From Octopus sinensis (lineage: Eukaryota), in NCBI RefSeq assembly GCF_006345805.1, contig NW_021835481.1, positions 5,022 to 69,021 of the forward strand: a stretch of DNA of 64,000 bases, read 5' to 3'. The notes below the pieces were generated by a model that saw only the letters and a program-made list of their open reading frames with translations, ran no database searches and was not told the DNA's origin. The position numbers were made by a program, and so were the translations under genes. Of this stretch, positions 6,039-45,716 are shown piece by piece; within the stretch, counting starts at the first letter, position 1, and every line of letters begins with the position of its first letter.

Positions 6039-6079
<41 letters not shown>

Positions 6080-7200: not shown

Positions 7201-7228
7201 TGATAACTAGGAATTTCTACAAAATGTA

Positions 7229-15336: not shown

Positions 15337-15657
15337 TTTTACCAAAATCAGTCACAATCAAGAGTATTTCTAACACAGTTCCTGTGGAAAATCAGATCAA
15401 AAGTTATGAATGCCTTATTAAAGACACCAACCCTGAATTTTCAGTCTTTTGGTTGATTACCAGGAATGATGGAACACAAAAAAATGCTACAAAGTATATT
15501 TCAAACAAGTCAAGCAAATCAGGAAAGCTGACTACTTTATCATCAGAACTGACATTAACTCTTAATAAGAATTTTAAGAAATTACAGTGTGTTGCATATT
15601 TTCCGGGTAAAAATGAATTTGGTAACCATTCAAAGGAACTCGATTTGCATATAAAAT
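15337..15657 (+). CDS. Ig-domain exon (C2-set/CD80-like) of a nephrin-like multi-Ig cell-surface protein
   Basis: Acceptor ttttcctatttcAG and donor t|GTAAGT; 321 nt, phase 1-1. Encodes LPKSVTI...YECLIKDTNPEFSVFW...SSELTLTLNKNFKKLQCVAY...LDLHIK, with the Ig Cys pair, a Trp and N-glycosylation sequons NAT, NKS and NHS. Confidence 0.88.
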
Positions 15658-15955
15658 GTAAGTTTTTCTTCTTTATCTCTATAAAGCACAAAGTATAGAT
15701 TTGTTCAAAATATTTTTGTGAAATATTTCTTCATTTCTAGATTTATATTTACTACAACAATGAGAAGATTACACAACTTCAGCAGTTTTGAAAAGATTTT
15801 TTGTTTTAATTCACTTTTTTGTTGTTGTAATATCGTATCTCTGAGCAATTATGAACTAGTTGATCCCAAAATATATGTGGTCATTTCTGTAATTTGCCTA
15901 AATTTACTAAAGCATCTACTTCATTGAGTTCTGGTTTCTAGAGTAAGATGTATAA

Positions 15956-16150
15956 TGTTGTGGAAGGATTCCGACCACTTCCTAATGATTAAACATGGAC
16001 TGATACTTTTCTATAAAATAAAGAACTGTCGAGTTGACTCGAGCAGTTGATAGAAAGTGTTTAGCCTCATCTAGCAGCAGTAGTACTACATCATACGAAG
16101 ACCTTACTTTACGCCCAAATCAGAAAATATATCCAACGCAGTAGGCTATA
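15956..16150 (+). mobile_element. Putative 5' LTR of a Gypsy element
   Basis: Starts TG, contains tataaaa/aataaa at 16012-16022, and lies immediately upstream of the PBS and gag. Confidence 0.5.
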
Positions 16151-16154
16151 AAAA

Positions 16155-16164
16155 TGGCGATGAG
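16155..16164 (+). promoter_or_regulatory. Primer-binding site (probably tRNA-Ser(GCT)-type)
   Basis: TGGCGATGAG is one CpG-decay change from TGGCGACGAG, the complement of the tRNA-Ser(GCT) 3' end, and sits between the LTR and gag. Confidence 0.5.
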
Positions 16165-16229
16165 ATATTCGAAGCTTGCATTGAACATTAAAACTTTTGG
16201 TGCAAAACAAAAAATTGTTTAACATGGAG

Positions 16230-17245
16230 GACTTATTGGCCTCCATGCAAAATCAGCATTAACAACAACTACAACAGTAACAACAACAGCAACTACAACA
16301 GCAAAGCCAACAGTTGCTTGGATTAAAATTAAAGAAGTTTAAAAATACTTAAGGTTCATACTCGCCAGAGAGCATAGCAAACTCAGTTGGAGAATTCAGT
16401 TATAATCCAGAAGACTGGATCACCTTCTCTGTATATTCTCAAAGATATGAAGAAATGTTCAAAGAAGAATGTATGGATGGATGAGAAAAAAGTACTACTA
16501 CTTTTAAGAAAGTTATCCCCTGCTGAACATGAAAAATATAGTAGCTATATTCTGCCGAAGAAACCAGGTGAGATTTGTTGTGATGAAATAATTTTTTATT
16601 GAAAGATTTCAGTGAAAGAAGTTCCCTGTTCTGTACTCACTGGTAGTATTTAAATTTGGTTAAAGAAGATGATGAAGATTTTGTCACCTATGCCAGGGTT
16701 GTTAAGAGATTATGAAAAATTCAAATTAAATGAATTAACCCTTGACATGTTCAAATGTCTAATTTTTGATCAAGCAAAGATGCAGATATCCATTTCTGAA
16801 TATTAACAACATTAGAACAAGACCAAAAATTAACTCTGTAGACTGTAGCAGAAGAATGCCAGAGGATTATAAATTTAAGAGATGACGCAGATAAAATTGA
16901 AAGAAAAGATTGCTCTCATATTCATTCATGTTGACCTGAATGAATAGAAAAAAGAAACAAATGTCAAGACCCAATCCATGCTATAGGAATGGAGGTTTAC
17001 ATTTCAAATGTAACTGCTCTTTTAAAAATCTAAAATGCTTTGAGCGTGGAAAAATAGGTCACAAAAGCTCACAATGTAAAAGGAAACGAAAATGTTTAAA
17101 GGTTGAATGAAATAAATTCTGGCAAGAAGGTATTGTCAACAGAAATCCTAAGCAAGGCTCAGAAAAGAAAATTCGAGTTTATAAAAATGAATAAAGTGAA
17201 TATCATGTTACAATTGGATACAGGCAGTGATATCACAATAATTAA
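16230..17245 (+). mobile_element. Ty3/Gypsy gag and protease 5' part (pseudogene)
   Basis: KVLLLLRKLSPAEHEKYSSYILPKKP (K02A2.6-like gag), a Cys/His knuckle at ~16978-17077 and the protease motif QLDTGSDITII at 17211-17243. Confidence 0.85.
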
Positions 17246-20200
17246 GCCTTTAGTGTTTAAACAGGTCATTACTGGCTGAAAATTATTCCTCTTTATTTGT
17301 TTGAACCAGTCAAATCTGCCATATCTGATTTCTCTACAAAATCACTAAAAAGATAAACAAATTATATTATTGAATTCTCGTAGCTTTCAGATAATGCGAG
17401 ATAAAGCCTTTCCCACCTTTATTCAAGTAAAAATATGGTGAAATTTTTGAGACTTCTTGGTTTTTAATGATATGGTATCAGCAAGTAGCAATTCCAACTT
17501 CAAAGATTTTACTCTTGATGATGTATAAAACACAAATGAAAACAGCAATGATTTGTCTGAAGACAAATCATATTCACATTTATGAATCTTCATCAGATGA
17601 GGAAAATTTTTATAATGAAAGTGATATAAATGATATTGAAAACATTATGGCAACATGGTTGAAGATTACTACATCAACCACAATTTCTGATTTCACAGAA
17701 AAGACTGGTCCATAATACAGTCTACCTCCCAATGCTCAATGACTGGACTATCTATTAATTTTTATTTTTACTGAAAAATTTTTTTTGAAACTGTCGCGGA
17801 GGAAACAAATGTTCAAGGCATAATTTATTTTCGCGGAAGACCCGATCCATTATGACAGCCAACTGATACTGTGGAAATGCGAGCTTTTTTTACTATAAAC
17901 ATTATGTTTGGTATCAAGAAGCTTACTCAGCTGAGGAACTAGTGGAATCCTGATATAAGGTATGGTGACCCATATATCTCCAGCATTATGTCTAACTATA
18001 GTTAATTCATATATCATGTAAAAAGCCACAAGGTACCTTCACCACCAAAGGACTACAACCATTTGAAATTTTGGGTTGACATTGCATCTCAGTTATGGGA
18101 GGGCTTTTCTTCCAGAAAGCACAGAACTGGGAGAAAAACAAAATTAACTGAGAGAAAATATTGACTTCCATAAAGTGGAGAAAATGAATGGTAGGGAAAA
18201 AGTTTGCAGATTGTGTTCACTGCAAATAAGTAAAACTCCAAAAGGATATCACTTTGAGACCTCATATATGTGTTTGTTTTGCAAAGTGCCCTTGTGTAAA
18301 GGGTGCTTTGGACAGTTTCACCATAGAAACATGGCATTACTATATTTTGTTGTTTGATAGTAATACTATCATGTATTCTTTTCATTTTATTAGAAATAAT
18401 ATGTGAAAGTGCAAAATACATATTTATTTTCATACATATTTATGTTACACACCTATATTCACCTTTGCCTCACCTATTAATGAGCTTTCTTTATTAGATA
18501 CATTTTGTTATGTAAATGTATTCATTAAATTGTATAAGAGTACATAGCCAATGGTATATTGACTAGTATAAGAGTTTTGTACTAGATGAGATGCAGTTTG
18601 GTTTCTTGCCAGGGAAAAGCACCACTGACGCTATATTTCTGGTAAGACAGCTGCAGGAGAAATACCTAGCCAAAGATAAGCCCCTGTACCTGACTTTCGT
18701 TGACATGGAGAAAGCCTTTGACAGGGTCCCCCAATCCCTTATCTGGTGGTCAATGTGGAAACTAGGGATAGTTGAATGGTTAGTGAGAGCCATGCAAGCC
18801 ATGTACATGAACGCTGTCAGAAAGGTGAGGGTTGGCAACGAGTACAGTGAAGAATTCAGGGTAGAGGTAGGGGTCCATAAAGGTTCAGTCCTCAGCCCCC
18901 TCCTATTTATCATAGTCCTCCAGACAATAATGGTGGAATTCAAGACAGGATGCCCCTGGGAGCTCCTCTATGCTGATGACCTTGCTCTAATTGCTGAGTC
19001 ACTATCAGAACTAGAGCACAAGTTTCAAGTATGGAAAGAAGGATTAGAATCAAAGGGCCTTAGAGTCAACCTAGCTAAAACCAAAGTCCTAATAAGTAGG
19101 AAGGCAGGCAAACCACAAATCCCTTGAAGTAGATGGCTCTGCTTGATCTGTAGAGAAGGCGTAGGTAGAAACTCTATAAGATGTACCCAGTGTAAGCTAT
19201 GGACACATAAGAGGTGCAGCAATATCAAAGGAAGGCTACCTGGGAGGATAGTTTTGTATGTGGCAGATGCTCAGGAGCAATAAATAAAACTGAAAATGTG
19301 CAAAGAACAACTTCCACCACATCCCAGAGAGAATAACTAGTAGTTGATAGCTTCCATTACCTAGGTGACCTAGTCAGTAACGGGGAAGGGTGCACTGAAA
19401 GTGTAGCTGCTAGAATAAGAATAGCCTGGGCAAAGTTCAGAGAGCACTTACCTCTGCTGGTGACAAAGGGCCTCTCTCACAGAATAAAAGGTAGACTGTA
19501 CGACACATGTGTACAATCAGCTACATGGCAGTAAAACATGGGCCGTGACTGCTGAGGACATGCGTAAGCTCACAAAGAATGAAGCCAGCATGCTCCGATG
19601 GATGTGTAATGTCAGTGTGCATACTCGACAGCGTGTTAGTGCCTTGTGAGAAAGTTTAGACCTAAGAAGCATCAGATGTGATGTGCAAGAGAGACAACTG
19701 CGCTGGTATGGTCATGTGGCGAGAATGGATGTGGATAGTTGTGTGAAAAAGTGCCACACCCTAGCAGTTGAGGGAACCTGTGGAAGAGGTAGACCCAGGA
19801 AGACCTGGGATGAGGTAGTGAAGCATGACCTTCAAACACTGGGCCTCACCGAGGCAATGACTAGTGACCGGGACCTCTGGAAATATGCTGCGCTTGAGAA
19901 GACTCAGCAAGCGCAAGTGAGACCATAACCTTATGGTCTATGCCAGGGGTGTAACCAGTCCACTTTTGCATGCCTTTCCTTCATTGGACACTAAACTCTG
20001 CTTGCGAAGACTTGTTGAGGCATAAACTCTGCTTGCGAAGACTTGTTGAGGCAAGTGAAGTCAAAATCGAAATCAAACTCGAAGACTGACATCTGTGTTA
20101 GTGGGGCGCTAAGAGTACCATATGAGTGAGATCGTTGCCAGAGCAACAATCTGGCCTCTGAGCCGATGGCAGGTTAAAAACATCATTGGAGCATGATTGT

Positions 20201-20979
20201 TACCTGCGTTGCCTTACTAGCACTTGTGCTGGTGGCATGGGAAAAAACATTCGAGCGAGGTTGTTGCCAGTGCTGCTGGACTGGCTCCTGTGCAGGTGGC
20301 ACATAAAAAGCGCCTATTAAGCATGGCCGTTGCCAGTACTGCCAGCCTGGCCCCTGTGCCGGTGGCACGTAAAAGCACCCACTACACTCTTGGAGTAGTT
20401 GGTGTTAGGAAGGGCATCTAGCTGTAGAAACTCTGCCAGATCAGACTGGAGTCTGGTGCAGCCATCTGGTTTGCCAGACCTCAAGCAAATCATCCAACCC
20501 ATGTTAGCATGGAAAGCGGACATGAAATGATGATGATGATGATTTTCGATAAGAATATTTGAATGAAATACAGGAAAAGAATAAAATCTTATGCTAATTA
20601 TAAATGTAATTCAAATTAATGTGCTTCTTCTTGAAAAGTGGCAAAATTGTTACTGGTTGAGATTGGGGATGATTTTCGCAACAAATCATATAGGTAAGAT
20701 GCATTAAGAATTTCAGTTTTAGTGTTTATCCATAATGTTATTACTGTTAATTAAATTTACTTGCTCATAAAAGTCAAAGTTAATCAACTAGATCAGCTAA
20801 AATTACATAACTATAATCTTTTGGTATATAAGCACCCACTGACAAAATTTCAAATCTGTATATAAAAAATAACAAAGTTACAAGCAATTATTGTGGACAC
20901 CCCTCTTGAACCTGAATAATTCAAAATAACGTGAACAAATAAGCATTACATTTGACAGATTAATCTGAACACTAAAGAG
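17246..20979 (+). mobile_element. piggyBac-like transposon, internally deleted, with TTAA target duplication
   Basis: TTAA at 17242-17245 and 20980-20983; terminal ctttagtgtt / aacactaaag inverted repeats. Remnants include an acidic N-terminus, EMRAFFTINIMFGIKKL..WNPD and a C-terminal Cys-rich domain, CRLC...CLFCKVPLCKGCFGQFH (18175-18357). Confidence 0.85.
18581..20543 (+). mobile_element. RTE LINE copy C, 5'-truncated, nested in the piggyBac
   Basis: QFGFLPGKSTTDAIF, GVHKGSVLSP, LLYADDL and LRWYGHV; the 3' UTR ends in a (TGA)n tail. Confidence 0.92.
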
Positions 20980-20983
20980 TTAA

Positions 20984-22530
20984 TACAGATACAGGGAGAA
21001 AATTGGGAAACCTAAATTGAAAGAAACTTCAAAAATTGCATGTGGTGTTTCAGTAAAAAAAATTACATTTCAAGGGTGAAATGATAAGTGATATTACATT
21101 TCATGGAAAAACCTTGAAAGTTTTTCTACTAAATAATAGGACAAATTTATTTGGAACAGACTGAATGGAATTATTTAACTTATGGGACCTTTCCATATAT
21201 TTTTCCTGAAAAATGTGAATGGTCTTTCCACCAGTACAAATCAGGTGTCAGAGGAATTAAAATAAAAATTAAAAATGATTTTTCCTGAAGTTTTTTCCTG
21301 ATGAATTAGGTCTTTGCACCAAAAGAAAGGTGAAGTTTCAAGTAAAAGAAGACATTATTCCGGTATTTAAACCAAAACAAACTGTACCTTTCACAGCATT
21401 GAAATAAGTTGATGGGGAATTGAATAGACTTGAAAAGCTTGAGATTATTGGAAAAATTGATCATGCTGAATGGGCATCACCAACAGTTTACGTCAAAGAA
21501 AAGAAAGCAAAATCCACGTATGTGTTAATTTTTCAACAGGGTTAAACAAGTGTTTGATCACTCATAATTAATTGTTACCAGGTCCAGAAGGAATTTTTGC
21601 TAAGTCAAATGATGGGAAAGTTTTTTCAAAGCATACCTACAGATACAAGTGGATTAGGAGTGTTCAAAAGTATTAACAATAAACACTCATAAGGGATTAT
21701 ATTAATTTAATGGATTTCCTTCTGACATAAAAGTTGCTCCAACTATATTCCAACTAGAGATGGATACGAAGCTTGCAGAGTGCAACTTTGTGATGACCTG
21801 CCTGGACAATATAGTAATTAAAAGTGAACCTTGGGACCTGTATGTAGAGCACATAAAGTATGTGTTGGAAAAAATAAGGGATTACAGCTTCACTTTGAGT
21901 GAGGACAAGTGTGAATTCCTACCGAAAATCAAATGTTTAGGGCAAATTATTGATAAAGATGGTCATCAACCAGATCCATCAAAAGCAGATGCATTTAAAA
22001 ATATGCCCTCTTTGACAACTATATCTACTTAAAACCTTTTTCTGAACTTGAAAACTATCATCAAAGTGATATACCAAAGATATATAAGGTAAGAGCTCCA
22101 CTAAATAATCTACTAAAAAAAGATGTAAAAGTGGAATTGGTCTGAAAATTGTCAGAAGGCATTCAACAAAATGAAGAAAATATTAACATCTGATTTGTTG
22201 TTAGTACATTTCGATCCTGTATCAGAGATAGTTGTAGCTTCAAATGCCTCTGAGTATGGTATCAGAGGCAATAATGCTACATAAATATATAGTAACATGA
22301 AGACTGTGGGTCATGCCTCACTTTCTCTGATACCAGCAGAAAAAATTTCAGCCAAATTGAGAAAGAGGCTCTAGCAATTTAGCAATTATTTTTGTTATAA
22401 AAAATTTCATATATTCTTACGCAGTAGAAGTTTTTGATTACAGACTGTTCAGCATCCGTTATTATCTATATACAAGTTGAAGAAAGGAATCCCTACCCAT
22501 ATTGCTAATACATTACAACTCAGAGGTACT
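20984..22530 (+). mobile_element. Ty3/Gypsy protease 3' part, RT and RNase H (pseudogene, no integrase seen)
   Basis: PVFKPKQTVPF...EWASPTVYVK, CLDNIVI (YLDD equivalent), LVHFDP..IVVASNASEYGI and SQIEKEALAI. Confidence 0.85.
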
Positions 22531-22539
22531 ACATATTAC

Positions 22540-24400
22540 ACTTGTTAGGTGTTCACTCCTATTGCCCAGTTTCCTTTGGTACAGTTCTGAAATTGATCAA
22601 TATTTTTAGTCAGGATTGAAAGTTTAGAAGATATCTTTTGCAGTTATTTAAGAATATCTTTGCTCTGTCTATTTTTGTTTCGGTTGGTTTTTGATGACAT
22701 TTTCATTCCTTGTGTGGGGAATATGTATAGAAAAAATAGTTATTAATCCATATAAGTAGTAGTAGTTATATAAAGGAAATTAAAAAAATGTTAAAAATGC
22801 ATTGAGAGTGTATAGAAAGATATATTAATATTAATGCACTTAACAGTTTCCACATTTGTATGATTTTCAAAATTATAAGATTTGAGGGACATAGAGCTGG
22901 TTCAGCTACAGTATTGCCTCTAGCTGTTGTTCTAAAATGTGTTTTTATAGAGAGAGTGAGACTCAGATCACTACCAGTTAATGTACAGATTGATTGGATG
23001 AGAATGGTCTCATAGTGAGGTAAGGGATTTCTGTGGTAAATTCTCTGCTACATTTATACATTAATGTCATGTGATGACCATATGTAAACGCCACTTCAAA
23101 AGTTAAATGCAGTAGATATGTCATGTGACAATCAGAACAATAGCTATGCTTAATAAAAGTTACACCTGAATTTTGGGCTGTGTCTAGTTGCTGTATGAGT
23201 AGTTATTATCTTAATTATCTAAGGTGAAGTATTAGTGTCTCATTTGTTCTTTGTATAATCTTGAAAATGTGGACAATTCTTATAATAAGACAGTAGCCTA
23301 ACTTGCCTAAAAAGAGAGGCAGAAGTTTATAAGGAGGTGAAGTTTATTTTAAATGCAGTAATGTTTAAGAAAAATATTTGAATGGTGATAGAGAACTATA
23401 AAAAAGGTAAATACAATAAACTCATTGGAAGTTGAAGTGGATAGGCTGTGTAACTTGGATATCAGCATTTATTGATGACTTTGTAATGTTGGCTTGAATA
23501 CTAAGTGATACCTACATCAGCAATGTCCTTAACAGAAACAAGACCATATTCACTTCCATCAGCAGGGATCTTCATATAAAAATGAAAAGCATTTATAGTG
23601 AGTGGCAAATTGTATATTTTTGATGTTTTTGTAGCCTACTCAACTATGGTTTGAATTTTTAAATAAAAGTATTTTCTTTACTTATTTGTGTTTGTGTTGT
23701 GGTATCACCTGTACAGTGATAAAGTGGAAAGACTAGGAATTTGTGGGATTTCATTGTTGCATATAGGTCCAACTGTTCACTGTTTGAGATGTATCTAGTC
23801 CTGGGATCTCAAATTTGTATTATTAATCTTAGTGTATCATTAATCTCATTTTCAAACTCAGTTTGGTTTTTCCAATGTAATCTTCACTGCATATATTACA
23901 TTTGATGACTATGTTAAATTATTTGATGAGCAAGTGAAGTTGTTTTCACAATAAAACGATATGCTGATTTAAATTTATGTTATGTATCTTCAATAAGTTT
24001 AGTACAAGTTATGAATTTAGAACTAGACTTTTCAGCTGTTTATAGGAAGTAGTTCTGAACTGGTATATAGTTTTTTGCCTTTTTAACGTTAAATGTCTTA
24101 GTGTTTCTTGTGGTCTGTGTTGTAATAATTGTTATAAAAGGTAGAGTTTTGTGTGTATCTTCAATGTCTATTGCTTTGGCATGTTCTATTCAATTCCCTG
24201 TTATCTTAGACAGGTATTGTCTTTCAAGTACTGCCTGTTTTAATTGTTGGAGCTTTTTATACTGTACTTCAAGATTGGAAACAAGAGAGTGAAGTTCTAG
24301 CAATGTTAAATGGTATATTTGGTTTGATATGTGTTGGTTGGCATAAGGTAACTAGTAGGTACTGTTTATATTCTGGTTAAATGTATCTCTTATGGCCACT
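22540..24400 (-). mobile_element. Possible very decayed Penelope-like element
   Basis: Only weak motif echoes on the minus strand (LVSNLEVQYKKL near 24290, RPFSSN near 23000, LLN near 22620). Confidence 0.3.
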
Positions 24401-25195: not shown

Positions 25196-25267
25196 CATGG
25201 GAGATGGATGTTGAATGTTGATAATGATGATATATAATACTTACATATAAATATATATATATATATC

Positions 25268-27809
25268 TCATCTAGGGACATCCTCATCAAGAAATTTGAT
25301 GAGAGGGAGGAGGAACTATAGTCCTCAGACATAGATGGTAGCTGGAAATTCTTATGGGACAGCTTACTGAGTGCCACAGACCAAGTTTGTGGATGGTGCA
25401 AAGTCCCTTCCAGACCTAGAGTTTTGTGGTGGTGGAATAATACGGTAGACAAAGCCATTAGAGCAAAGAAACAAGCCTGGAATTCCTGGAAGGGTGGGAG
25501 TAGCAGAAAACTGTACCAGATAGCCAAAAGGGAAGCTGGGAGACAGGTATACATAGCCAAGGGAGAAGCAGAAAAGAAGTTTGCGAATGTCCAGCGATGT
25601 GAGGACCAAAGAACTGAAGTATGTCGGATTGCAAGACAGTGTAAGAGAAAATTGTGATGTCACAAGAGAGAAATGTGTCTGCATGGATGATGGTGCACTT
25701 GCTTTTAATGATTCAGAAAACATGAGGCTTGGAGGAGCCATTATGAAAGACTGCTGAATGTGGAGAATGAATGGGAGGAAGAGAGCCTGCCAAATATTGA
25801 TCCAACAGAAGGACCAGCTATCTAAATACACAGCACCCTGGTAGATAAAGGAATTATGGATATGAAGCTAGGAAAAGCCCCTGGCTAATCAGGAATCACC
25901 ACTGAGATGCTTAAAACATCTGGTGGTATGGGCTATGGCCTAGTCACCTGTATTGTAAACCAGGTGGTTCATGATGGAGTTATACCCAATGACTGGCACA
26001 GCAGCACCATAGTCAATTGCTACAAAGGTAAAGGTGATGCTTTAGATAGAAATAACTACAGGGCTATCAATCTGCTGGATCAGGTGATGAAGGTCATGGA
26101 AAGGGTCATAGCCTAACTAATTAAAGAGAGAGAGTCTGCTTAAATGAGATGCAATTTGGTTTTGTGCCAGGTAGATGCACCACTGATGCAATATTCCTGG
26201 TACAGCAACTGCAGGAGAAGTACCTAGCCAAGATATATTTGGCTTTTGTGAACTTGCAGAAAGCCTTTGACAGGGTCCCCCAATCCCTTATATGGTGGGA
26301 AAAGGGGAAACTGGGGATTGACAAATGGTTAATAAGGGGTATACAGGCCCTATACAGAGTAGGGTTAGTATTGGAAATGAGTATAGTGAAGATTCGGGTA
26401 GAAGTTGGGGTCCACCAAGGATCAGCCCTCAGCCCCCTCTTATTCATCATAGTCCTCCAGACAATAACAGAGGAATTCAAGACAGATTGCCCTGGGAACT
26501 GCTCTATGCTGATGACCTGGTCCTCATAGCAGAATCCCTACCAGAACTAGAGAAGAAAACATCAAGTGTGGAAGCAAGGTTTAGAATCAAAGGGCCTTAG
26601 AGTCAACGTTGTAAAGACCAAAGTTCTAGTAAGTAGGAAGGCGAACAATCACACACCCTTCAGGTAGGTGGCCTGTTCGACCTATAGAAAAGGTCTAGGT
26701 AGAAACTCCATAAGATGTACCCAGTTTAAGCTATGGACACGTAAGAGATGCAGTAATATCAAAGGAGATTAACCAGGAAGATAGCTTTCACATGCAGCAG
26801 ATGCACAGGGGCAATCAACACCACACAGATGCTCAGAAATCAGATTCCATCACATGCCAGGGGAAGAAACTAGAAGTAGTTTATAGCTTCCACTACCTAG
26901 GTGACCAAGTCTGTAGTGGGGAGTGAATGCTCAGAGAGTGGTTACCACTAGAATAAGAATAGCCTGGGCAAAGTTCAGAAAGCTTCTACCCCTACTGTGA
27001 CAAGGGTCTCTCACTCAGAGTGAAAGGTAGATTGTATGATGCATGTGTGCGAACTGCCATACTTCATGCTGCTGAACATGTGTAGGCTTGAAAGAAATGA
27101 AGCTACCATGATCCATGGATGTGTAATGCCAGTGTTAACACATAACAGTTGTAAGCTCCCTGAGAGATATGTTAGAGACATAAGAAGTATTGGATATGGC
27201 ATGCAAGAGAGACATTTGCATTGGTATGGTCATGTACTACAGATGGACAAGGAGAGCTGCGTGAAGAAGTGCCACTCCCAAACAGTGGAAGGAATCTGGG
27301 GTAGAGGTAGACCCAGGAAGATATGGGATGAGGTGGCGAAGTATGACGTTTGAACATTGGGCCTCACAGAGGCAGTGACAAAAGACCAAGACCTTTGGAG
27401 GTATGCTGTGACTGAGAAGACCCAGCAAATAAAATGAGTCCACAGCTGTAACCTACACCAGTGTCACATAACCAGCCCACTCAAAAGTACCTTGGATCGT
27501 AGGGTGACATGCCATGCTTGAGGAGATCTATTGAGTCAAGTACATAAACATCAACAGCAATATCAAAATGAAATCAAATGGAAATTGTAGTTGTAAACCC
27601 CTTGCTGGTAGCATGTAAAAAGCACCATCCGGGCGTGGACAATGCCAGTGCCGCTTTGACTGAATTCTGTACTGGTGGCATGTAAAAAGCATCATCCGAT
27701 TGTGGTCAACGCCAGCTCCTCTGGCTCCTGTGCCGGTGGTACATAAAAAGCACCCACTATGCTCTGACTTGTTGGCATAAGGAAGGGCATCCAGCTGTAG
27801 AAACACTGC
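25268..27809 (+). mobile_element. RTE LINE copy D, truncated at both ends and disrupted
   Basis: WWWNNTVDKAIRAKKQAW, QFGFVPGR, GVHQGSALSP, LLYADDL and LHWYGHV; the 3' UTR is present but there is no tail. Confidence 0.9.
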
Positions 27810-28699: not shown

Positions 28700-30380
28700 G
28701 TGGAAATATGCTGTATGGTCATTTAGGCATTTGGATTTGTGGAAGAATTTGAATGTGTGAAAAAAGTGGTGGTTGCATGTGCTTAGTGCCTCATTATGTT
28801 TATTTAGCAGTGTTGGATAGTTGTGCTTTAATATGTGAAGTGCCTCCTTCAGGCAAAGCTAGCTGGTTGAGCGTTGACCTCTGTAGGGATGCCCTAAATC
28901 CAGTAGGGTATATTTGTATTTTTGAGATGATGTATATGGTTGGCGAGTGCTGTAGATTTACTATGTTTATCATATCTAAAAGAATGGAGGTGAGCGGCAT
29001 ATCGCTGCTTAAAATTTTGGGTTGATCCTATGTATATGGCTGTAGAGTTGTGTAATATATTAAGGACAGTGCATTTATAAATTACATTATATCTTCTGCA
29101 ATGGGTTTGTAACAGGCAGATGATTCCAGGATGGCAGGTACAATTAAGTGAATTTTGGGGAATGTGTTCAGGAATGGAGGAGGTAATATTATCAGAGGAG
29201 AGGTTAGAGAAGGGGGTCGAAGATTCTAGATTATTAGTATTATTAACATTATCATTAATGTCATTGTTATTATTACTATTGTTGTTATTAATTGTACTAT
29301 TTGTAAGAGTGGTAGAAATTGTGGTGGTGTTCTGGGCAGTGTCAGTAGGATGGGTTGGGTTGTGGTTGTGGTCTAATGTAAGGGCATCTGTGCTGGAGCT
29401 GTGTATATGTTGAGTGTTCTTATGACTAGAGTTGTAATTATGTGAGTTTTGATAGTAAAGTGCTTATTAGAGGCTGCTACAATAGATTCAAAATTGGGTG
29501 GGGCAGAATAAGATAGTTTCAGAGTGGATCTAATAAAGATAGAATGATATTTATGTTTCTGAAGGAAGTTAGAGTCTAGTATTTTAAAGAAGGATTCAGC
29601 TAAGTTCTTAAAGTTAAGTGAGAATGGGGGTATGTACCACAGAATGGCGCATCTGCCACTTATTTTAGAGTGTCTGGATGTAGTGCTATCAAAGTTTTTA
29701 GATAAAGAAGTGCTATCTATACTTTTGTAGAATGTATGTGGGCAGTGAAGCCTTTTGTTATTAGCTGTTTTAGTTGTTTTAGTTTTTGACCTAGTGTTAA
29801 ATGTATGTATGTGGGATCTAGGTTGCCTTGGTGTAAGACCTTCCTGGGTTCCATCAATGAGTGTGTGTGGTTGGTCGTTATGATGGTTGGTGGGTGTTTG
29901 AGATGTGATTTGAAATATATATTGTTTGAGCTTGGTGTTATGGATGTATTCTATTTGTTGGAAAATGCCACTAGCAGCAAGTGCTTGTGTGTAATATGGT
30001 GCGTGATTATTGAAAATTTCCTCAGTGGAAGAGAGGTTAGATATGCAGATTGGAGAGGATGTTAAAGTACAATTCGCTTTCTGCTTACATCTTACCCAGA
30101 ACGTGATATATAACTGTACAATAAAAACTACAACTAATGATTTTATATATATCAGTTGTTTGATTAATATGAAACGGCGTCTATACAACTACCTGTCATC
30201 CTTTAAACTTAAGTATAAAGCAATTTGTACGTTATTATCCAGTAAAATTTGGAAATTGAAGGAAATAGCAGATATGGGTGTGAGCTGTTCTCTATGGAAA
30301 CATGAAATTTTTAAGCAAAAAGATAAGGGCAACCTGATTAATAATTGATTAGACCTTAGGGTATCATATGTACATAGTGT
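28700..30380 (-). mobile_element. Penelope-like element (RT thumb region + GIY-YIG), decayed
   Basis: ISNLSSTEEIFNNHAPYYTQALAASG, ILWYIPPFSLN...IFIRSTLKLSYS and FKQRYAAHLHSF...STALANHIHHLK...CLKEALHIL...LLN. Confidence 0.8.
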
Positions 30381-30384
30381 CACC

Positions 30385-32300
30385 TGTACCTTTAAATATT
30401 TTAGAAAGTAGCACTTTATTGATCTTGAAATTTAAAACCTATTAGAAACTTCTTTGCTCAAAATTAGTATATAGTGAGCATGTCCTACAACATTATTACT
30501 TTAGCTAATACAGGGTAACAGTCTTTAGAGATAAAAGCTGAATAAGTAAATAAACTATTTTTAGTTTTAAATACTTGAATTGTATACATTTTCTATAAAT
30601 CTTCTCTATTGATGTTACTAAGTTGTGTATATACTTCATCATTATTTTTAGTGATTAAGCTATTTTATGTACTTTTCTATGGTGTTCTACCCTACCTAAT
30701 GATTTTAAAGTGTTCTGCCCTCCTGATCTTAATATTTATATAGGCCTTTATATAAGTAGCCTTTCAAATTAAGTACCCCTAAGAAACTATAAATATTATG
30801 TATGGAGTAAGAATAATATCTTCTAAAGCTTATAATATATTTCTTAGTTTTAAAATTTAGTATGGAATTAGTATGCCCTATAACATCAATATTCCTTTAG
30901 ATAATACCAGGTATCAGTCTTTATTGATCCTAGCTTAATAAATAAAGATTTAATTTTAGTTTAGTATACTTAAATTATTATACATTTTCTTTAAACCTTC
31001 TCTAATGATGTCAATAAGGTATATTTACTTTGTCATGTTGTTAGTGATTAAGATATCGGCAAGGTTGCATCCTGTCACCAGCAGCCTTCAACATGTACAC
31101 TGAAAAGGTCATGAGGAATGCAGGCCTGGAGGATAGCAGCATTGGAGTTAGGATTGGAGGAAGAAATATTAATAACCTTCGCTATGCAGATGATATAACC
31201 CTGCTGGCGGAGAGTGGTAAGGATCTGGAGGATCTTGTCCTGCTGGTCAAGAAAGAGAGTGAGAAATTTAGGCTGTACCTCAATGTTAAGAAAACAAAGA
31301 TCATGTCAACATCAGCCATGACAAACATCAGCATCAAGATCGATAATGAAGAGATTGAAGTGGTTGATGATTCCATCTTCCTTGGCTCCAAAATAAATCA
31401 AGATGGTAACTGCACTCCAGAAATAAGATAGTACTAGGATAGTACTAGGCAGAGAGGCAATGGTCAGCATGAGCAGGGTCTGGAAGAGTAGAGACATCAG
31501 ACTCGCTACCAAATGCAGATTGGTGAATGCAATTGTCTTCCCAATAGCAACATATGGATGCGAGACATGGACACTAAAGAAAGCTGACCAGAAGAGAATT
31601 AATGCATTTAAGCTTTGGTGTTGGAGAAGACTTTTACGGATTCCATTGACAGCGAGGCTCACCAATGGAGAAGTTCTTAAGCAGATAAGGTCGGAAATGT
31701 TGCTAGAAGCTAGGATCACCAAGCATAGATTGGCATATTTCGGTCATATTATGCGGAGAAAATCCCTGGAGAAGGACATCATGCTCGGAATGGTCAGTGG
31801 CAAGAGAGGAAGAATCCAACCGAGAACCTGCTTGCTTGACACCATCAAGAGTGATACCGGAATGGACATAGCCAGTCTGAAAGAAGCGGCCCAGGATAGA
31901 ACTGACTGGAGGACACTGATCCAACGAGTGACCGAGAGTCGACTTCAACTGAGTGGTTAGGAGAAAATGGTGTTCTGCCCTACCTGATTATTTTATTATC
32001 TATTATTTTAAAATAGCCTTTATTTATTTATAAAATGAATCTAATTTTGTACCTCTATAAATTCATACTGAGCATATACAAAACAATACTGGTATATTCA
32101 CTACTTAAAATAAACTGCTTAGATTATAATTTAATTAATATATAGTTAGTATGCTCTCTTACCTCAGTACACCTTTATTAAATACCAGTATATACTAATT
32201 GATCATTCTTCATAGATACAATCTGATAAGTTCGTATTTAAGTATATAATAAGTATAAATATTAAGCTATTATGAGATAACTTCTTTTCCTCCCTCTAAT
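30385..32300. repeat. Diverged ~400-bp AT-rich tandem repeat (about 3 units) interrupted by a LINE
   Basis: Recurrent blocks: ttagtat..cct.t..cat...cctttag.taata.cagg (30465, 30858, 32147), agtgattaag.tat (30647, 31043) and atggtgttct.ccctacct (30679, 31967). Confidence 0.6.
31056..31966 (+). mobile_element. RTE-BovB-like LINE, 5'-truncated and well preserved
   Basis: RQGCILSP, NINNLRYADDITLLAES, LNVKKTKIM, FLGSKI, ATYGCETWT and LAYFGHIMRR. The only lesion seen is at 31427-31448 (gatagtactag x2). Confidence 0.9.
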
Positions 32301-33589: not shown

Positions 33590-33750
33590 CAGTGAGCTGG
33601 CTCAATCATTACTGCACTGGGCAAAGTGCTTAGCAGCATTTCTTGTTTTTACATCCTGAGTTCAAATTCCACCTGAAGGTGATTTTGCCTTTCATCATTT
33701 TGGGTCGATAAAGTAAGTACAGTCAAGTACTGGAGTCATTGTAATCAACA
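33590..33750 (+). mobile_element. tRNA-derived SINE, family 1
   Basis: ctgagttcaaattcc...ttttgcctttcatcattttgggtcgataaagtaagtac, homologous to 4139-4371. Confidence 0.75.
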
Positions 33751-34339
33751 AAACCCCTGTGAAACAGTTGGTGATTCGCTGTGCTTGAGAAGATTCATCC
33801 AGCTAAGTAAAATCAGGACAATTAAGGCATGTCATTTATGCCTATGTTCCAGGCAAACTTCTCCCACACAATCCAAACACCTCCCCCTCCTTCCATCCAT
33901 ATTCACCACTCACTGTATTCCCCTCCCTTCTATCTCCCACTCTCCCTTTGCACCTTTGTAAACCTACCTGCATAAAATGTGTCCCCGTCAAATCTCTTCC
34001 CAACAACATATCCTCCTAACATTCTGCCTCTGTCTGCTTGTGTCCACTTGCTGCAGCCCTTCCCCTCTACCTTTCACTCTTCTTTTGCATTCTCATAAAC
34101 TTACCCACCCACTCACCCTATCCAATCACTTACACCCCCTGTAACTTGAGTGTACTCCCCCCCCCATTATCACATCATCATCTCTCACCCTTCCCCTCTT
34201 TTTCCAGCTGAGGTAGCCATGCATCTCCTCTACTGCAAAGCAGTTATTTCTGTCCCTCTATTCCTCTTATCACTTAGCACAAAGCCACTGCTTTTGATAC
34301 TATTTCTCCTCTCAGTTGAGGAGTCTAGCCTTGCAAGTT

Positions 34340-35499
34340 ACTTACTTAGTGATGTTACTGCTGCCAGTGCCATGTAAAAACTTCATGTCCACAGTTGCAT
34401 GTGAGCATGGAACATTTGTTATTAAAAGGATGATGATACATTAAAGCACACATACATATACACAATTATAATAATAAAAATGGACAATTAGGCTTCTTGT
34501 ATCAAAGCAATGGATCATACACAATATTTTGAGTGGTACAGGTGCTGCAAAAGTGGAAGAACATTCCTGAAAGACACTGAGCAATCTGGAAGACCTGGAA
34601 CAAGCATCACCCCCAGGAAAGTGGAGAAAATTCATCAGCTTGTGCATGAGGACTGTCGGAGGAATGAATGACATTGCTGATGTTGTTGGTCTGTTGTATG
34701 GGTCCATGCAGGCAATTCTAATACCTGAATTGAACATGTGGTGTGTTTCTGCCAAGTTTGTCTCTCACCTACTGAGCAGAAAGAGTATCATGTTGAAGTT
34801 TGTCAAGATCTTCGTCAGTATGCCACTGATGACTCATCTTTTATGTCAAGGATCATCACCAGTTACAAGAGTTGAGCCTACAGGTTTGACCCTGAGACAA
34901 AGCAGCAGTCATCACAGTGGAAGAGCCCTTCATCTCCATGACTGAAGAAGGCACGACAGAGTCACAGCTCAATCAACAACATGCTCATCATTTTCTTCGT
35001 CATCTGTGATATTGTGCATTGAGGGTTCATCCTCCAGAGCCAGACTGTCAATTGTAACTTCTGTGATATTTTGAAACATTTGAGGAAGGGACATTTGGTG
35101 AAAGCAACCAGATTTATGGAGTGTGAAGAATTGGATTCTTCATAACAGTGTACCCTGTTACCAAGCTCCCCTCACTCATGAGTTTCTCCCCCAAAACAAT
35201 ATGGTATGACTTCCACACCCACCATGTTCGCCAAATTTAGTGCCTGCAGAATTCCATCTATTTCCCAAGATGAAAATGCAGCTCAATGGTCACGGTTCTA
35301 ATACTTTTAATCACAGAAGGTCTTCAACTCACTTATGGAAAACAACTTTCAGGTTGGATTCCAAAAGAGGCAGGAATGCTGAGACAAGAGTATTGTCACA
35401 CAAGGTGACTATTTCGAAGGAGATGATGTTAAGACTTAGTAAGTAAATAATTTTGTATTAAATATAACTAGTCCGGGAACTTTTTGATACTACCTCGTA
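34340..35499 (+). mobile_element. mariner (DD34D-type) transposon remnant
   Basis: IITSYKS*AYRFDPETKQQSSQWKSPSSP and HPPCSPNLVPAEFHLFPKMK. The right TIR ccgggaactttttgatactacctcg+TA ends at 35499; no left TIR was found. Confidence 0.85.
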
Positions 35500-35509
35500 T
35501 CTTTAATTG

Positions 35510-39580: not shown

Positions 39581-39799
39581 AAGTATTGTGGAGGCATCAA
39601 ATGAACCAAATCTGGACAGAGTGGTGCCAACAACTATGTATACATTTTACCTTGTTTTGTATTTTTACTGTGTATGTTTTCTACACATTTTTATCATGCA
39701 ATTCTATTTAAATCACCACATTTTATCTTCATCTTTGTGTATTGTCTCCCTCATCCATCACCCAGCTTGCAAATGAAAGAAATTGTAGCTGTTGTTGTT

Positions 39800-41340
39800 A
39801 ATGTAGTAAACTAGCAGAATCTTTGAAGCATTAGAAAAATGCTTTGTGGTGTTTGTTCCAACACTTTATGTACTGAGTTCTATTCTTGCAATGGTCAGGT
39901 GTACCTTTCACTCTTTTGGTGTTGATAAAACAAAATAAAATTGTATAATATTGGTGATATTGACTAATTCCTGGAAAATTGTCTAACTGTCACCTTTATT
40001 ATTATTATTATTATTATTATATTATTATTATTATTATTGTGGCAGTAAGCTAGCAGAATTGTAAGCACACCAGGCAAAATTCCTAGCAACATTTCATCCA
40101 TTTGTATGTTTTGAGTTCAAATTTTGCTGAGGTCAACTTTACCTTTCAACTTTTCGAGGTTGATAAAATAAGTACCAGTTGAACCCTGGGATAGATGTAA
40201 TCACCATGCCCCTCCCTCAAAATTGCTGACTTTGAGCCAGAATTTGAAATCATTATTATTATTGTTAAGGCAGTGAACTGACAAGACCATTAGCATGCTA
40301 AACAAAATGTTTGCAACATTTCATTTGTCTTTATATTCTGAATTCAAATGGCACGAGGTTGTCTTTCATCTTTGCAGATGACTAGGGTCTCATTGTAATT
40401 GGCTAACCCCACCTCCCTCAAAATTTCACCTTGTGCCTATAATAGGGTTATTGTTATTCAAGATGGCAAGCTGGCTGAATCATTGGCACACCAGGCAAAA
40501 TGTTTAGCAGTATTTCACCCATTCCTATGTTCTGAGTTAATTCCTCAGAGGTTGACTTTGCCTTTAATCCTTTTGGGGTTGATAAATTAAGTACCAGTGA
40601 AATACTGGGGTTGATGTAATTATTTAGTCCCCTCCCACCAAATTACAGGCCTTGTGCCTTTAGTTTTAGATTATTATCATTATTGTTATTATTATTATTA
40701 TGGTGTCAATCTGACAGACAAGATGTGTCAAACAAGATGTGTTGCAATATTTGCATTCATTTCCTAGTGAGATTAAATTCACCCTTAGTCCTTCCAATGT
40801 TGATAAAAATAAAGAAATTAAGTCAGGTGGTTGATGTTATCAGCTAACACACTTCACCTCGAAATTGCTGGCCTTTTGCAAAAACCAAAAGTAATTATTG
40901 GTTCCATATTTTGGCACAAGGCCTGCAATTTTAGGAGTTGGAGTAAGTTGATTACGTTGACTCCAGTGTCCTACTTGGTACTTATTTTATTGACCCTGGA
41001 AGGATGAAATGCAAAGTTCATCTCAGCAAAATTTGACCTCAGAATATAAAGTTGTTGAAATGCCACTAAGCATTTTTCCTGATATGCTAATGGTTCTGCC
41101 CGCTCACTGCCCTAAAATCCAAAGTAATTAATGTGGTAAATAAGCAGCATCAGCAGAGGATGGGACAAAATACAATGCATTATTTAGTTAGGCCTGTTTA
41201 CATTCTGAGTTCAAATTCTATTGAAATTGATTTTTGACTTCCATTTCTTCAAGGCCAGTAAAAGAGAGAACCCATCTTGGGTCATTGATATTGACATAGC
41301 CCCTCCTCTCAAAATTGTACCTGATTTATTACAAATGTGA
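39800..41340. mobile_element. Cluster of about 7 family-1 SINE copies (6 forward, 1 reverse at ~40900-41110)
   Basis: Repeated gagttcaaatt...ctttcat...gttgataaa..aagtaccag cores at ~39870, 40110, 40340, 40530, 40770 and 41205, separated by (ATT)n tails. Confidence 0.75.
39998..40038. repeat. (ATT)n microsatellite
   Basis: Direct reading. Similar simple repeats lie at 3573-3610, 4372-4430 and 6039-6077 (TA), 60360-60398 (ATT) and 63762-63793 (CA). Confidence 0.9.
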
Positions 41341-41516
41341 CCAATGTTCAAATCTTTATTATTAGAAACATATTTAAAAAATTTTGAAAAATTGCTAATT
41401 TTCTTCAAAATATACTTCTGGTTTGTTTTTTTCTTTACTTTTTTGTTCTTTTATTAAGTGCACTAATTTGATTTTGTTTGTTTTTCTTTTAACTCTTTAT
41501 GTTCTGAAATTCATAG

Positions 41517-41767
41517 ATTCTCCAGAAAATATGATACTAGATGTTTCTGGAGGAAAAGTATGTGTTGATACTCCAACCAAATTCCGCTGCAGTTGGAAAG
41601 GTGGTAATCCACCAGCAAGTGTAACCCTGGAGTATGAAAAATACTCAAATACTAGTAAAGAAGAAGTTGAAATTAATGTAATACCTTCCAAATCTCATCA
41701 AACAGTCAAGTGTCGGGCATTCATATTGCTGCAAATGTGTCTCGTGAAAAGAATTTAACTATTCATT
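41517..41767 (+). CDS. Ig-domain exon 2 of the same gene, with an apparent 1-nt frameshift
   Basis: Acceptor ttcatAG and donor t|GTGAGT. Encodes (Y)SPENMIL...FRCSWKGGNPPASVTL...TVKCRA, then in a shifted frame HIAANVSREKNLTIH; 251 nt instead of 252. Confidence 0.85.
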
Positions 41768-42254
41768 GTGAGTATAATGAAGCATCTTTTGAAAATTTTA
41801 TCTTCTGTTTTTATCATTTTCTTTTTTTAATTCAAATATGAAAAAAAATTTTAACTGTAAGATTTAGTCTTTTGTATATGTTGGTTGGTTTGGCTGTAGG
41901 TTTTTGAGTGAAGGAAAGAAAAAATAATAATATCCTGTGATTCCAAACCAGTGTGAGCGTTGTTATTCTTCTGGAACTATGTATCTAATTGCATTGTTGG
42001 AATTTGTGTAGTTTTATCATGCAAGTTGAATATACAGAGGAAATAAACTTATGGTCAAATGCCATTATAAATAGTGCCCCAGCATGACCACAACTTTGAA
42101 GTTGAAACAATTTAAAGATTTATGGCTAAATATCTGGGAGCTCTTTAAATTTTATTTAGGAAAAGAGATCAGTAATTAGAGGGATATCAAATTACTGGAC
42201 TAGTTCATTAAAGTCAGAAAAAGAGTTATGGCTCTGTTGATAATTGACAGTTAA

Positions 42255-44705
42255 ACTAGATGAGATGCAGTTCAGTTTTGTTCTGGAAAAAAGAAGTACT
42301 GATATCATATTCCTAGTGAGTCAACAAGTGAAGAACCTGTTGACCTAGAGAAAGCCTTTGACAAAGGTTACTCATTTGGGGATCTAGTAATTATTGATGA
42401 AGCTAGGAGTATAAGAATGGCTTATGTGAGCCATACAATCCATATACAGGTGTATTGTCAGCAATATGAGAAATAGCAATGAGTACAGTGATGACTTTAG
42501 TGTGTAGGTAGGATACCATCAGTGCTTAGTCTCTTTCTATTTATCAAAGACCTCCAGGGGAGTTTAAGATTAGGTGTCTACAGGAATTCTTATTTGCTCA
42601 TGTTCTCCTTTTTATGGCTGAAGCTGGAGTAAGACTGGGAAAACATTACAGGTGTGAAAGCAAAGCATGGAATCAAAGGGCCTCATTACCTTGGTAAACA
42701 TTCAAATCTTAGTAAATCAGAAAACATACAAGACCCTTCATCCATCTGGATAATTACCTTGTTTCATATGTAAAAAAGAAATGGGTGGAAAGTTGATATA
42801 GTGTATCCAGTGCAAACTGTGTATGTGCAAGAGATACAATGGAATTATGGGTAGGTTGACAAAGTGACATTGTATATAGCAGGTGTGCTGGAGCAATAAA
42901 CTTTAAGTGAACATGAGAAATGAAGCCTTCAAAAGCCCAGGAATATTTCTAGATGTAATAGAGAGCTTTTGTTATCTAGGTGATCAAAACAGTATTGGTG
43001 GAAATTGTTCTCAAAGTGTAGTAGCCAATGTAAAATCTGAGTAGAGAAAGTCCATGGATTTATTACTTCTGTCATAAACATAAAGTTTTTCTCTCAGTGT
43101 GAAAAGCTGACTTTTATGATGCTTTTTTCAACTTGAAATGCTCCATGATAGTGAGACATGAGCCTTGAATGTGGAGGACCTGAAAAGACTAGAAATAAAT
43201 AAAGCATACATGCTCCACTAGATATGCAATGTTAGTGTGAAAGATTGATGGAATACAATGTGTTGAGGAGAACAACTGGCCAAGAATTAAATGTAGTATA
43301 CATTAGTTTGGGTATGTAATATGTATGGATAAGACAGTTGTATATAAAGTAATGATCACTCACAGTAGATGAAACCTGTGTGAGAGAAAGACATGGGATG
43401 AGGTAGTGAAGGCTGATCTCAGGATGCTGGCACTCATGGAAGAGATGACAAACCAAGTTGATTAGTGATATGCAGTACTCAACATGATTTACCTTCCTAT
43501 GATTGCACATCATGGCTAAGGCTCTCAAAGCGTAATATATATATATATGTACACTATGCACCTGAGTCGTCTCCCCCATCTATCCAGACAACAAGTTCCC
43601 CCTTCAAGCCACTTCCATTCTCCTCATTGTAACAATTGACAATCCCTACCTCACCCTTGTTAATATCCATCTTAAACTCTCATCTTCATTTGTAACTTCT
43701 GGATCGCTGCCACTTCCTATTGATACTCATTCCTCATTTTTGTCATCCATGACTACATTCCTTTCCTCGTTGGGTTTCAATTTTCACATTCACTTCACTC
43801 ACAACCTCAACTCCACTTCTCATCCTCACATCTCACTCGCAATCTCTAATTCTACATCCAGCATCCTATCCCCTCAGTCTCCTCCACTTGCAACCTGAGT
43901 TCTATCCCTCATCACGCTATCACACATTCCTCTATCATTTCCCAATATACTACATTTTTCTGCTCTTGTAAGAAACTGATATAGAACCTGCTACTATATA
44001 CCATACCATTGCCATCTCTGTACTGCTGATCACCACTCTTCTCTATACTATTCTCAATCAGCCTTCATTCCTCATTCTCAATTGTACCTCACTCATACTG
44101 GTTACCTCCACCCTTGTTCACCCTTCTCTACATTTATCTTCTATATACTACTGACCTCATTCACCTCATGTTTATATCCACCTCACTCTCCTTTCACACT
44201 CTTACAGCCTTTTCGCAAACCTTCATTATTCTCCTGTATCCTTCTCTCTCCATTTATCTCTTGGACATGTTACCATGCATGTATGTTCTGTTACCTTGTC
44301 ATCACCATTTTTACCTCTTGAGTCCCATTCCAGTCCTTCCCACCCATTGATGCAAAATAAATAGTTGCCATACATCTTTCTGCCACCCTCCACAGTGATA
44401 CTTTAACATCTCAACTCCTTGCTTAAAGCATCCACCCTATCTCTTATCTTCCCCATTAGTTGAATAGCTCTTCAGTCTTGCAAGTTTCAAAGGAACCTCA
44501 TTAGAGTTGATGCTATGAAAATAGCACCCAGTAAACTCTGTAAAGTGGTTGGCATTAGGAAAGGTATACATAAAGCATGCTAAAACTGACTTTTAAGCAA
44601 GATGTGGTTCTCTGGCCTGCAGGACCTTGTTAAAACGTATTGTCATGCTAGCATGGAAAGCAGACACAAGATGATAGTGGTAGTGGCAGCAATGATGATT
44701 ATCAT
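42255..44705 (+). mobile_element. Old decayed RTE copy with a C/T-rich insert (~43540-44480)
   Basis: ctagatgagatgcagttcagttttg (DEMQF), acctagagaaagcctttgac and gacatgggatgaggtagtgaag. The 3' UTR and tail remnant lie at 44480-44705. Confidence 0.7.
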
Positions 44706-45597
44706 CATCTCTATGATGATAGTGCATGTCTATTTTGAGGAAGATATATACATATTAAGAATCCATATGTCAGAAAAAAATAAGCCCATTTACATTTGTT
44801 AATAGGGCAGGTATAATAGTCAAAATGTACAGTATTATAGATCCATTACAGCTAATCTTACCACTTGGTTTTACTCTGGGAATTAAAATGGATATTAGAT
44901 AACAGCACAATTAAGAAATACTCTGTGCTCTTGAGATCTGGTAGGTATGGAAAAAATATCTGTTTTGAGGAAGGTATAAAGAAATTAATAATGTAATGCA
45001 ATTTATGAAGTTTTGCAAAATGTAGGTAAAACATTATGAAAAGCCTGCACCAACAAATTTTCATAAATTCCTTTTTTAAAAACACCTATATTGTGGTATT
45101 TTAGTTTGACATTAAACTTCCCTTATTTTATTACAATTCTATCATTATCAGCAGTCCCAATTTACAAAAATGTAATATTTCATCATACACATTTTTATTT
45201 TATTTTATTTAATGATAGTAGTTGTGGAACCTATGTAGACTTATATTCAATGTTGCCTTTTATTCTGCATCCTTTTCCTGAAACTTTGTGTCTTGCTAAT
45301 TAAATTTTGCCAACATCTTCAAAACTTAAATGGTAGTCTGATGAAATTCTTGGATACAAGTATTTTTATATAGATGTGTATTTTCTAATATATTGGTTAG
45401 GATTTGAAAATTTGTATTGGACATTTCTTTCAGTGTAAAAGATTGCAATACTAATAGAATTTATTTAAAATTTTCTCATTTTTATGCATCACTTTATATC
45501 TAATGCAACTTGGAATATTAATCACCAATGTAACAGCAAAAAATAAAATATCTTTATGCAAGTATTTACGTAAATAATCTGATTTCCTTTTATACAG

Positions 45598-45716
45598 ATC
45601 CACCTAAAACAATAGAAATCAAGACTGATGAACCCTTTCTTGAAGGTCGCAAAGGTATTTTGCATTGTAAGGCAATAAATGGATATCCAGAAAAGTACAG
45701 CTACAGGTGGGATCCA
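45598..45716 (+). CDS. Exon 3: N-terminal half of the next Ig domain
   Basis: Acceptor ttccttttatacAG and donor cca|GTAAGT. Encodes (Y)PPKTIEIKTDEPFLEGRKGILHCKAINGYPEKYSYRWDP, with the first Ig Cys, G.P and Trp; phase 1-0. Confidence 0.85.

Follow-up and report, generated by a model that had tools for sequence, protein, structure and literature searches.

Nephrin, SYG-2 and Kirrel (IrreC) are single-pass membrane proteins with multiple immunoglobulin (Ig) domains. In vertebrate receptors of the CD22/Siglec and ICAM types, too, C2/I-set Ig domains form a chain, followed by one transmembrane helix and a tail containing numerous tyrosines. Cephalopods lack antibody-type immunity, and their neuronal adhesion repertoires are expanded. 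We analyzed a 64-kb stretch of Octopus sinensis DNA (contig NW_021835481.1; hereafter the window), which is AT-rich (36.7% GC) and abundant in transposon debris and TA/CA microsatellites. All its Ig exons lie on the forward strand. Judged by its sequence, the region studied is the middle (domains D3–D5) of a gene for a single-pass membrane receptor. The gene is one paralogue in a tandemly duplicated family that is restricted to cephalopods. The reading frame is broken in exons D4 and D5, and this break probably reflects poor quality of the assembly in this patch rather than real mutations.

The first-pass annotation of this locus had called the gene nephrin-like. This held loosely, since the gene encodes a membrane protein with several Ig domains, one of which (D3) matched C2-set_2 in Pfam (E=7.5e-6), but not as membership of that family. 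One fragment of a relative (P0006; P numbers denote database proteins and their models) was named 'synaptogenesis syg-2-like' by the automatic labelling of NCBI. On the other hand, nephrin and SYG-2 carry an FN3 domain that separates the Ig chain from the membrane. Pfam scans of the full-length relatives P0012, P0013, P0007 and P0016 gave only Ig-type families and no FN3. No nephrin, SYG-2 or Kirrel was returned by a PDB search, which gave ROBO2, ICAM-1, DSCAM and CD22 (E about 1e-6 to 1e-3), or by a HMMER scan of 1.84 billion representatives. The octopus tails consist mostly of YxN(V/I)S and (E/D)P(K/R)YLxM repeats. Of the YDxV-type docking motif of nephrin, a single instance (YDSV) was noticed, in P0012.

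The octopus tails that end in VxYxxL or TxYxxI-like motifs recall those of the vertebrate Ig receptors, and ICAM-1 and CD22 were among the weak PDB matches. This similarity was only that of the generic Ig fold, with no evidence of orthology. The locus is more properly placed as a further paralogue of an annotated but uncharacterized cephalopod Ig-receptor family.

The receptor family and the comparison copies

In members of this family, a signal peptide is followed by about eight Ig domains, each on a phase-1 exon of its own. A transmembrane helix then leads to a cytoplasmic tail rich in tyrosines. The full-length members P0012, P0013, P0016 and P0023 had a hydrophobic N-terminus, about eight Ig domains and one transmembrane helix. 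Their tails were 114–429 residues long, with 6–29 tyrosines and repeated D-x-Y-V-N-V-S-K-K-P and E-P-K-Y-L-x-M modules. The signal peptide, the transmembrane helix and the tail were all seen in relatives; the corresponding exons lie outside the window.

The first-pass annotation had suggested a lineage-specific family, and the searches bore this out. The spliced product of the window, used as a protein query, matched only Octopus proteins. A query from D2 to the C-terminus recovered 18 proteins belonging to O. sinensis/vulgaris or O. bimaculoides. Beyond Octopus, the HMMER scan found relatives in Argonauta hians (43% identity) and, more distantly, in cuttlefish (31–34%). The matches outside cephalopods were generic Ig domains of the hemicentin or perlecan type, at about 25% identity. 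A literature search on the multi-Ig receptor family found no paper.

The octopus paralogues share domain order and junction peptides with the window copy, with one Ig domain per phase-1 exon and per-exon identities of 89–100%. They are uncharacterized loci of O. sinensis/vulgaris (LOC115212114, LOC115212116, LOC115212249, LOC115212246 and LOC118763632) and of O. bimaculoides (LOC106879981, LOC106874069 and LOC128247864). The large introns of the window, rich in transposable elements (TEs), are collinear with those of the closest octopus copies. However, no annotated product equals that of the window copy, and its three single-base deficits occur in none of them. The nearest relative also differed from exon to exon, being P0003 for D3, P0007 for D4, and P0015 or P0006 for D5. 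This suggested that the window copy has a mosaic composition or represents a paralogue without annotation.

Tandem tyrosine modules (YVNVS-KKP, EPKYLxMK and EEQYAEVSGPxYLEL) were present in P0012, P0013, P0018, P0020, P0023, P0009 and P0024. The copy number of the modules differed widely among paralogues, and some of the tails ended in the tyrosine motifs mentioned above.

The genomic copies used for comparison were L001 (O. vulgaris OX597828.1), L002 (an O. vulgaris scaffold), L003 (O. sinensis VCDQ01000962.1) and L005 (a second O. sinensis scaffold). L003 was 99.3% identical to window positions 4386–25185, L002 was 93–99% identical to 26.5–60.4 kb, and L005 was 92–98% identical to 26.7–49.1 kb. 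The genome paper on O. vulgaris gives a heterozygosity of 1.22%, a split from O. sinensis of 2.5 million years, and the assembly methods (PMC10700109).

Exons D3 to D5 and the 25.9-kb intron

Exon D3 (15337–15657, forward strand) is C2-set_2-like and 321 nt long. It runs from phase 1 to phase 1 (ag/TT...AAAT/gtaagt, the slashes marking the splice junctions), and its open frame encodes (V)LPKSVTIK...LDLHIK. The encoded protein was 92.5% identical to O. sinensis LOC115230044 (P0003) and 89% identical to P0015. The next intron (15658–41516, forward strand) spans 25,859 nt and consists largely of TE debris. It is followed by Ig exon D4 (41517–41767, forward strand; 251 nt; ttcatag/AT...CATT/gtgagt), in which the frame is broken. 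The intron between D4 and D5 (41768–45597, forward strand; 3,830 nt) is collinear with those of L002 and L005.

These two exons and the TE-filled intron between them had been claimed in the first-pass annotation, and sequence, splice sites and frames confirmed them. The proposed junction peptides, LHIK-Y-SPEN and NLTIH-Y-PPKT, were correct as well. The end of the third exon, on the other hand, had been placed wrongly at 45716, since D5 runs to 45850 in relatives. The Ig exon D5 of the window (45598–45850, forward strand; starting cag/AT CCA CCT...) is 253 nt long, and that of all three intact copies is 252 nt. Its protein was 97–98% identical to P0015 and P0006.

In L002, L005 and L001, D5 continues past WDP to ...HWINVE/gtaagt. 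The intronless L001 gives the reading of the mRNA as WDPSNKTSQ...HWINVE-Y-PPDIT, and no intron follows WDP. The GTAAGT at the earlier exon end results from a GTA insertion (45717–45719, forward strand) that is private to the window and absent from these three copies. It creates CCA/GTAAGT, which resembles a splice donor. We rejected this site as a real exon end, because it would halve the Ig domain and no relative has it. Splicing at 45717 would also end the exon in phase 0, mismatching the next phase-1 exon.

That D3, D4 and D5 are exons of one multi-Ig gene, as claimed at first pass, is well supported by the junctions. The ...K-Y-SPE... junction was found together with the D4–D5 junction in at least seven annotated models (P0007, P0008, P0009, P0010, P0012, P0014 and P0015). 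The D4–D5 junction in its family form, ...I(H/Y)-Y-PP..., was shared by many annotated members. The exon order D3...D4 recurs in O. bimaculoides, where the orthologous intron measures only about 12.4 kb and has conserved ends. In the window, the three exons would be joined across an intron inflated by transposon insertions. A tblastn search over the 64 kb found no D1/D2 exons upstream and no D6-to-transmembrane exons downstream, and the gene would extend past both ends of the window.

Several NCBI models, on the other hand, draw D3 and D4 as parts of separate genes, with no intron of 25.9 kb. P0003 (O. sinensis) ends after D3 by reading through its donor into the intron, and P0004 (O. bimaculoides) ends in a small terminal exon within the intron. 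P0001, P0002 and P0018, and a 704-aa model of O. bimaculoides, begin at or in D4. However, the downstream models P0001, P0002 and P0018 have no signal peptide and are mutually inconsistent at their 5' ends, the starts being unrelated pieces (one mariner-like) or a methionine inside an Ig domain. The upstream models have no transmembrane segment, and the O. sinensis scaffold carrying P0003 merely runs out within the intron. Both sets of models look like broken annotations. With at least seven other family models linking D3 to D4 by exactly this junction, we consider two separate genes very improbable.

Frame breaks in D4 and D5

The length of D4 in the window is not a multiple of three; intact copies have 255 or 258 nt. 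In the entry frame, D4 reads SPENMILDV...QTVKCRAFILLQMCLVKRI and ends at a TAA (41756–41758), while the +1 frame, IHIAANVSREKNLTIH, is open to the donor. Both had been noted at first pass, with the missing base placed near 41718–41722. One base was indeed lacking, but the true site of this first break is 41714–41718 (forward strand), 0–4 nt off, where the window reads TGTC-GGGC. Here L002 and L005 have TGTCTGGGC (C-L-G), and the intronless L001 has TGTCGAGGC (C-R-G). The first 66 residues of D4 were 100% identical to the O. vulgaris model P0007, which continues KCRGIHIAANVS.

This had been described as a single lesion. There are actually three single-base deficits and the 3-bp insertion, distributed over two exons. 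The deficits are all private to the window and lie within 504 nt of the coding sequence of D4 and D5. A tblastn alignment across D5 changed from frame 3 to 2 to 1. At the second break (45726–45729, forward strand), one base is lacking at about 45728; the window reads AACAAACC, where L002 has AACAAAACC, L001 has AACAAGACC and L005 has AAGAAGACC. At the third break (45827–45831, forward strand), the window reads CAT AAAAA CAT, with five bases versus six in the relatives (AAAAGA, AAAACA or AAAAAA). The base at the missing position is G in L002, C in L005 and A in L001. These three copies are intact at all three sites.

We interpreted the three deficits, with reasonable but not strong confidence, as deletion errors in the consensus of the assembly and not as mutations. 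The real gene would then probably be intact. An assembly indel was one of the options listed in the first-pass annotation, and it is the one favoured here.

This interpretation was based on a three-way alignment, over 16.9 kb, of the window with its two closest genomic copies, L002 and L005. The three sequences were roughly equidistant (1.6–2.9% substitutions). The window had 29 private 1-bp deletions, compared to 4 in L002 and 12 in L005. Private substitutions, on the other hand, numbered 139 in the window, 202 in L002 and 234 in L005 (Fisher p for deletions against substitutions, 1e-7 for window versus L002 and 7e-5 for window versus L005). Private 1-bp insertions were few in all three (5, 3 and 4, respectively). 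Private indels longer than 1 bp numbered 22, 21 and 11, with no excess of the window over L002. The excess was thus confined to one class of indels and was mostly intronic. This fits a deletion-biased consensus error, and neutral decay of a gene cannot produce it.

The interval from 41 to 46 kb, which contains D4 and D5, held 18 of the 29 private 1-bp deletions. Six of 28 private deletions fell on columns at which L002 and L005 differ, compared to a background of 2.6% (p=8e-5). This enrichment fits a consensus mis-called at sites with a mixture of reads from different haplotypes or paralogues. The window has a specific excess of 1-bp deletions, and we infer that the three exonic deficits belong to this class of errors. 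Given 1.7 private 1-bp deletions per kb window-wide, three in 507–828 coding nt are not unusual (P=0.06–0.17). Indels aside, the D4 protein matched P0007 without a difference in the 66 residues mentioned above, and D5 showed no substitutions from L001 when compared by eye. L002 and L005 had 0.02–0.05 1-bp deletions per substitution, and at this ratio three real deletions accompanied by almost no substitutions would be very improbable. The splice sites were all intact, and no stop codon was left when the frame was followed through D4 and D5.

Several observations weigh against an assembly error. A simple error in homopolymer runs fits only in part: 45827–45831 is an A run, but the other two missing bases lie outside such runs in the nearest relatives (CGAGGC and AAGACC), a position less typical of errors in long reads. 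On its left, the window agreed with L003 at every base over about 15.5 kb, apart from 1–2 indels; the two would then have a consensus in common, or the error rate would be patchy. L005, which is from an O. sinensis assembly and perhaps from the window's own source, has fewer such deletions. Between 41 and 46 kb, the paralogue lineage of the window is not that of L002 and L005, and 'private' therefore covers a longer branch there. No database protein corresponding to the window copy was found, nor any database protein or Logan contig spanning D3–D4 of exactly this copy. The ratio of nonsynonymous to synonymous differences per site (pN/pS) was about 1 and gave no sign of constraint, the value between intact copies being equal. 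Large paralogous clusters are expected to hold some pseudogenes. Finally, the error is deduced from sequence comparison and not seen directly.

If the three deletions and the GTA insertion were genuine, the window copy would be a pseudogene or a null allele from which no full-length receptor is made. This would be in keeping with three independent frame breaks and a strong cryptic-donor insertion in two consecutive exons, all of them private. The density of private 1-bp deletions in exons was at least that in introns, and exons thus showed no protection. The absence of a matching annotated protein from the searched databases, the pN/pS of about 1.1–1.3, and the dead members usually included in tandem multigene families also speak for a pseudogene. 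However, the excess, of 1-bp deletions only, also fills the neighbouring introns and is unmatched in the sister copies despite their longer substitution branches. D4 and D5 contain no stop codons and almost no private substitutions, with intact splice sites. Substitutions, stop codons and dN/dS (the ratio of the corresponding rates) in D4 and D5 gave no sign of relaxed constraint relative to intact paralogues. The dN/dS of D4 had been proposed at first pass. For D4 and D5 together, pN/pS was 1.29 between the window and L002, 1.10 between the window and L005, and 1.02 between L002 and L005, which are both intact. Intact copies themselves gave a value near 1, so that the ratio cannot tell dead copies from live ones and was uninformative as a test. 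On balance, we regard genuine inactivation as rather unlikely, although it ranks second among the explanations and is a serious rival of an assembly error.

The first-pass annotation had also considered that D4 is skipped, which would keep the frame (K-Y-PPK), as expected from Ig exons that are all of phase 1-1. On this reading, the frameshifted D4 would be real, and direct splicing of D3 to D5 would give a shorter functional isoform. Some annotated relatives skip Ig exons, P0019 being without D3, P0016 isoform X5 without D5–D6, and P0020 without D3–D6. The product would not be rescued, however, because D5 itself is broken at two sites and the frame would not be restored. Moreover, the splice sites of D4 are consensus and the same as in intact copies. 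We hold this reading to be extremely improbable.

Divergence and annotation of the cluster

Comparison with L003 over 4386–25185 showed zero substitutions over 5386–13385 and one over 15886–23385. These were interrupted by three patches of about 3% divergence, at 4386–5385, 14656–15808 and 23.4–25.2 kb. Such a pattern points to tracts converted by paralogues, or to mosaicism of the haplotypes or the assembly. The second patch contains D3, in which 12 of 321 nt differed from L003, with nine amino-acid changes, over a background of 0.5%. Positive selection on D3 was considered and rejected, as the divergence forms a 1.15-kb tract with equal density in the flanks. The inclusion of the flanks, in one of three such patches, pointed to gene conversion or haplotype mosaicism instead of selection on the exon.

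The pN/pS of D3 between O. sinensis-type copies and O. bimaculoides was 1.2–1.6. This, with the values for D4 and D5, suggests that the Ig domains of the family evolve very fast while their frames stay open. Signs of rapid diversification were the pN/pS of 1 or more between intact copies and between species, the cassette-like skipping of Ig exons, and the kilobase-scale patches of about 3% in otherwise identical haplotypes, which suggest gene conversion. From its architecture, the protein may be a recognition or adhesion receptor that signals via tyrosine phosphorylation. The tyrosine-motif tails suggested a use in immune or cell-cell recognition. A broader reading would take the family as a cephalopod invention, a fast-diversifying tandem multi-Ig cluster for such recognition, with the window copy as a segregating null allele. 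Individuals would then differ in their functional receptor repertoires. We consider this combination improbable.

Should the lesions be real, the window would contain one dead member of a fast-evolving, cephalopod-only, uncharacterized Ig receptor family. As a candidate set of recognition receptors, the family is of moderate interest and a more interesting object than the frameshift. The main relevance is for annotation. In this stretch, about 1.5–4 single-base deletions per kb are probably spurious products of the assembly, and several NCBI models in the cluster are split or chimeric. Their faults include TE-derived first exons, termination by intron read-through, and spans of more than 140 kb across paralogues. 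The annotated gene ranges of P0007, P0010 and P0015 exceed 100 kb.

Two open reading frames (ORFs) elsewhere in the window have homologues among these models. One, at 9951–10394 (forward strand), is TE-derived, lies antisense to a LINE (long interspersed nuclear element) and is 94% identical to residues 199–285 of P0010. The other, at 51433–52918 (forward strand), is a piece of a Helitron/PIF1-like helicase and matches the first 76 residues of P0021. The models use such homologues as coding exons, and several of those in the cluster are thus TE-Ig chimeras.

In about 350 kb of comparison sequence, non-collinear DNA matched the D3–D4 intron over at least 39% of its length; some O. bimaculoides matches at the orthologous intron position are included in this figure. 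Four RVT_1 fragments were found in this intron (18567–19124, 21706–22029, 26125–26526 and 31048–31428). One gene model of O. sinensis takes a mariner-like fragment of the intron (34510–34656) as an exon. On the minus strand, 28897–30188 contains two long ORFs (189 and 271 aa), of which one, at 28897–29463, has a weak GIY-YIG match; a Penelope-like element may have left this pair behind.

The intronless L001 copy (33620–35073 of OX597828.1) carries family coding sequence from the 3' part of D4 through the transmembrane exon (33710–34915). It is annotated within a 'synaptogenesis syg-2-like' gene and has frame shifts of its own. The copy sits exactly between 89-nt inverted repeats that are 91% complementary (33620–33708 and 34985–35073). 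These have (TA)n on their flanks, and a poly(A) tail was not visible. It looks like a spliced gene fragment within an element bounded by terminal inverted repeats rather than a plain retrocopy.

Near the right end of the window, mirror-image ORFs occur on opposite strands at 61100–61770 and 62936–63590. The same CA/TG-rich low-complexity sequence and a shared ORF (...TVKTIEKVARCNENFRKIKIRNKWKF...) are present in both flanks, which enclose ORFs of no obvious family at 61642–62869.

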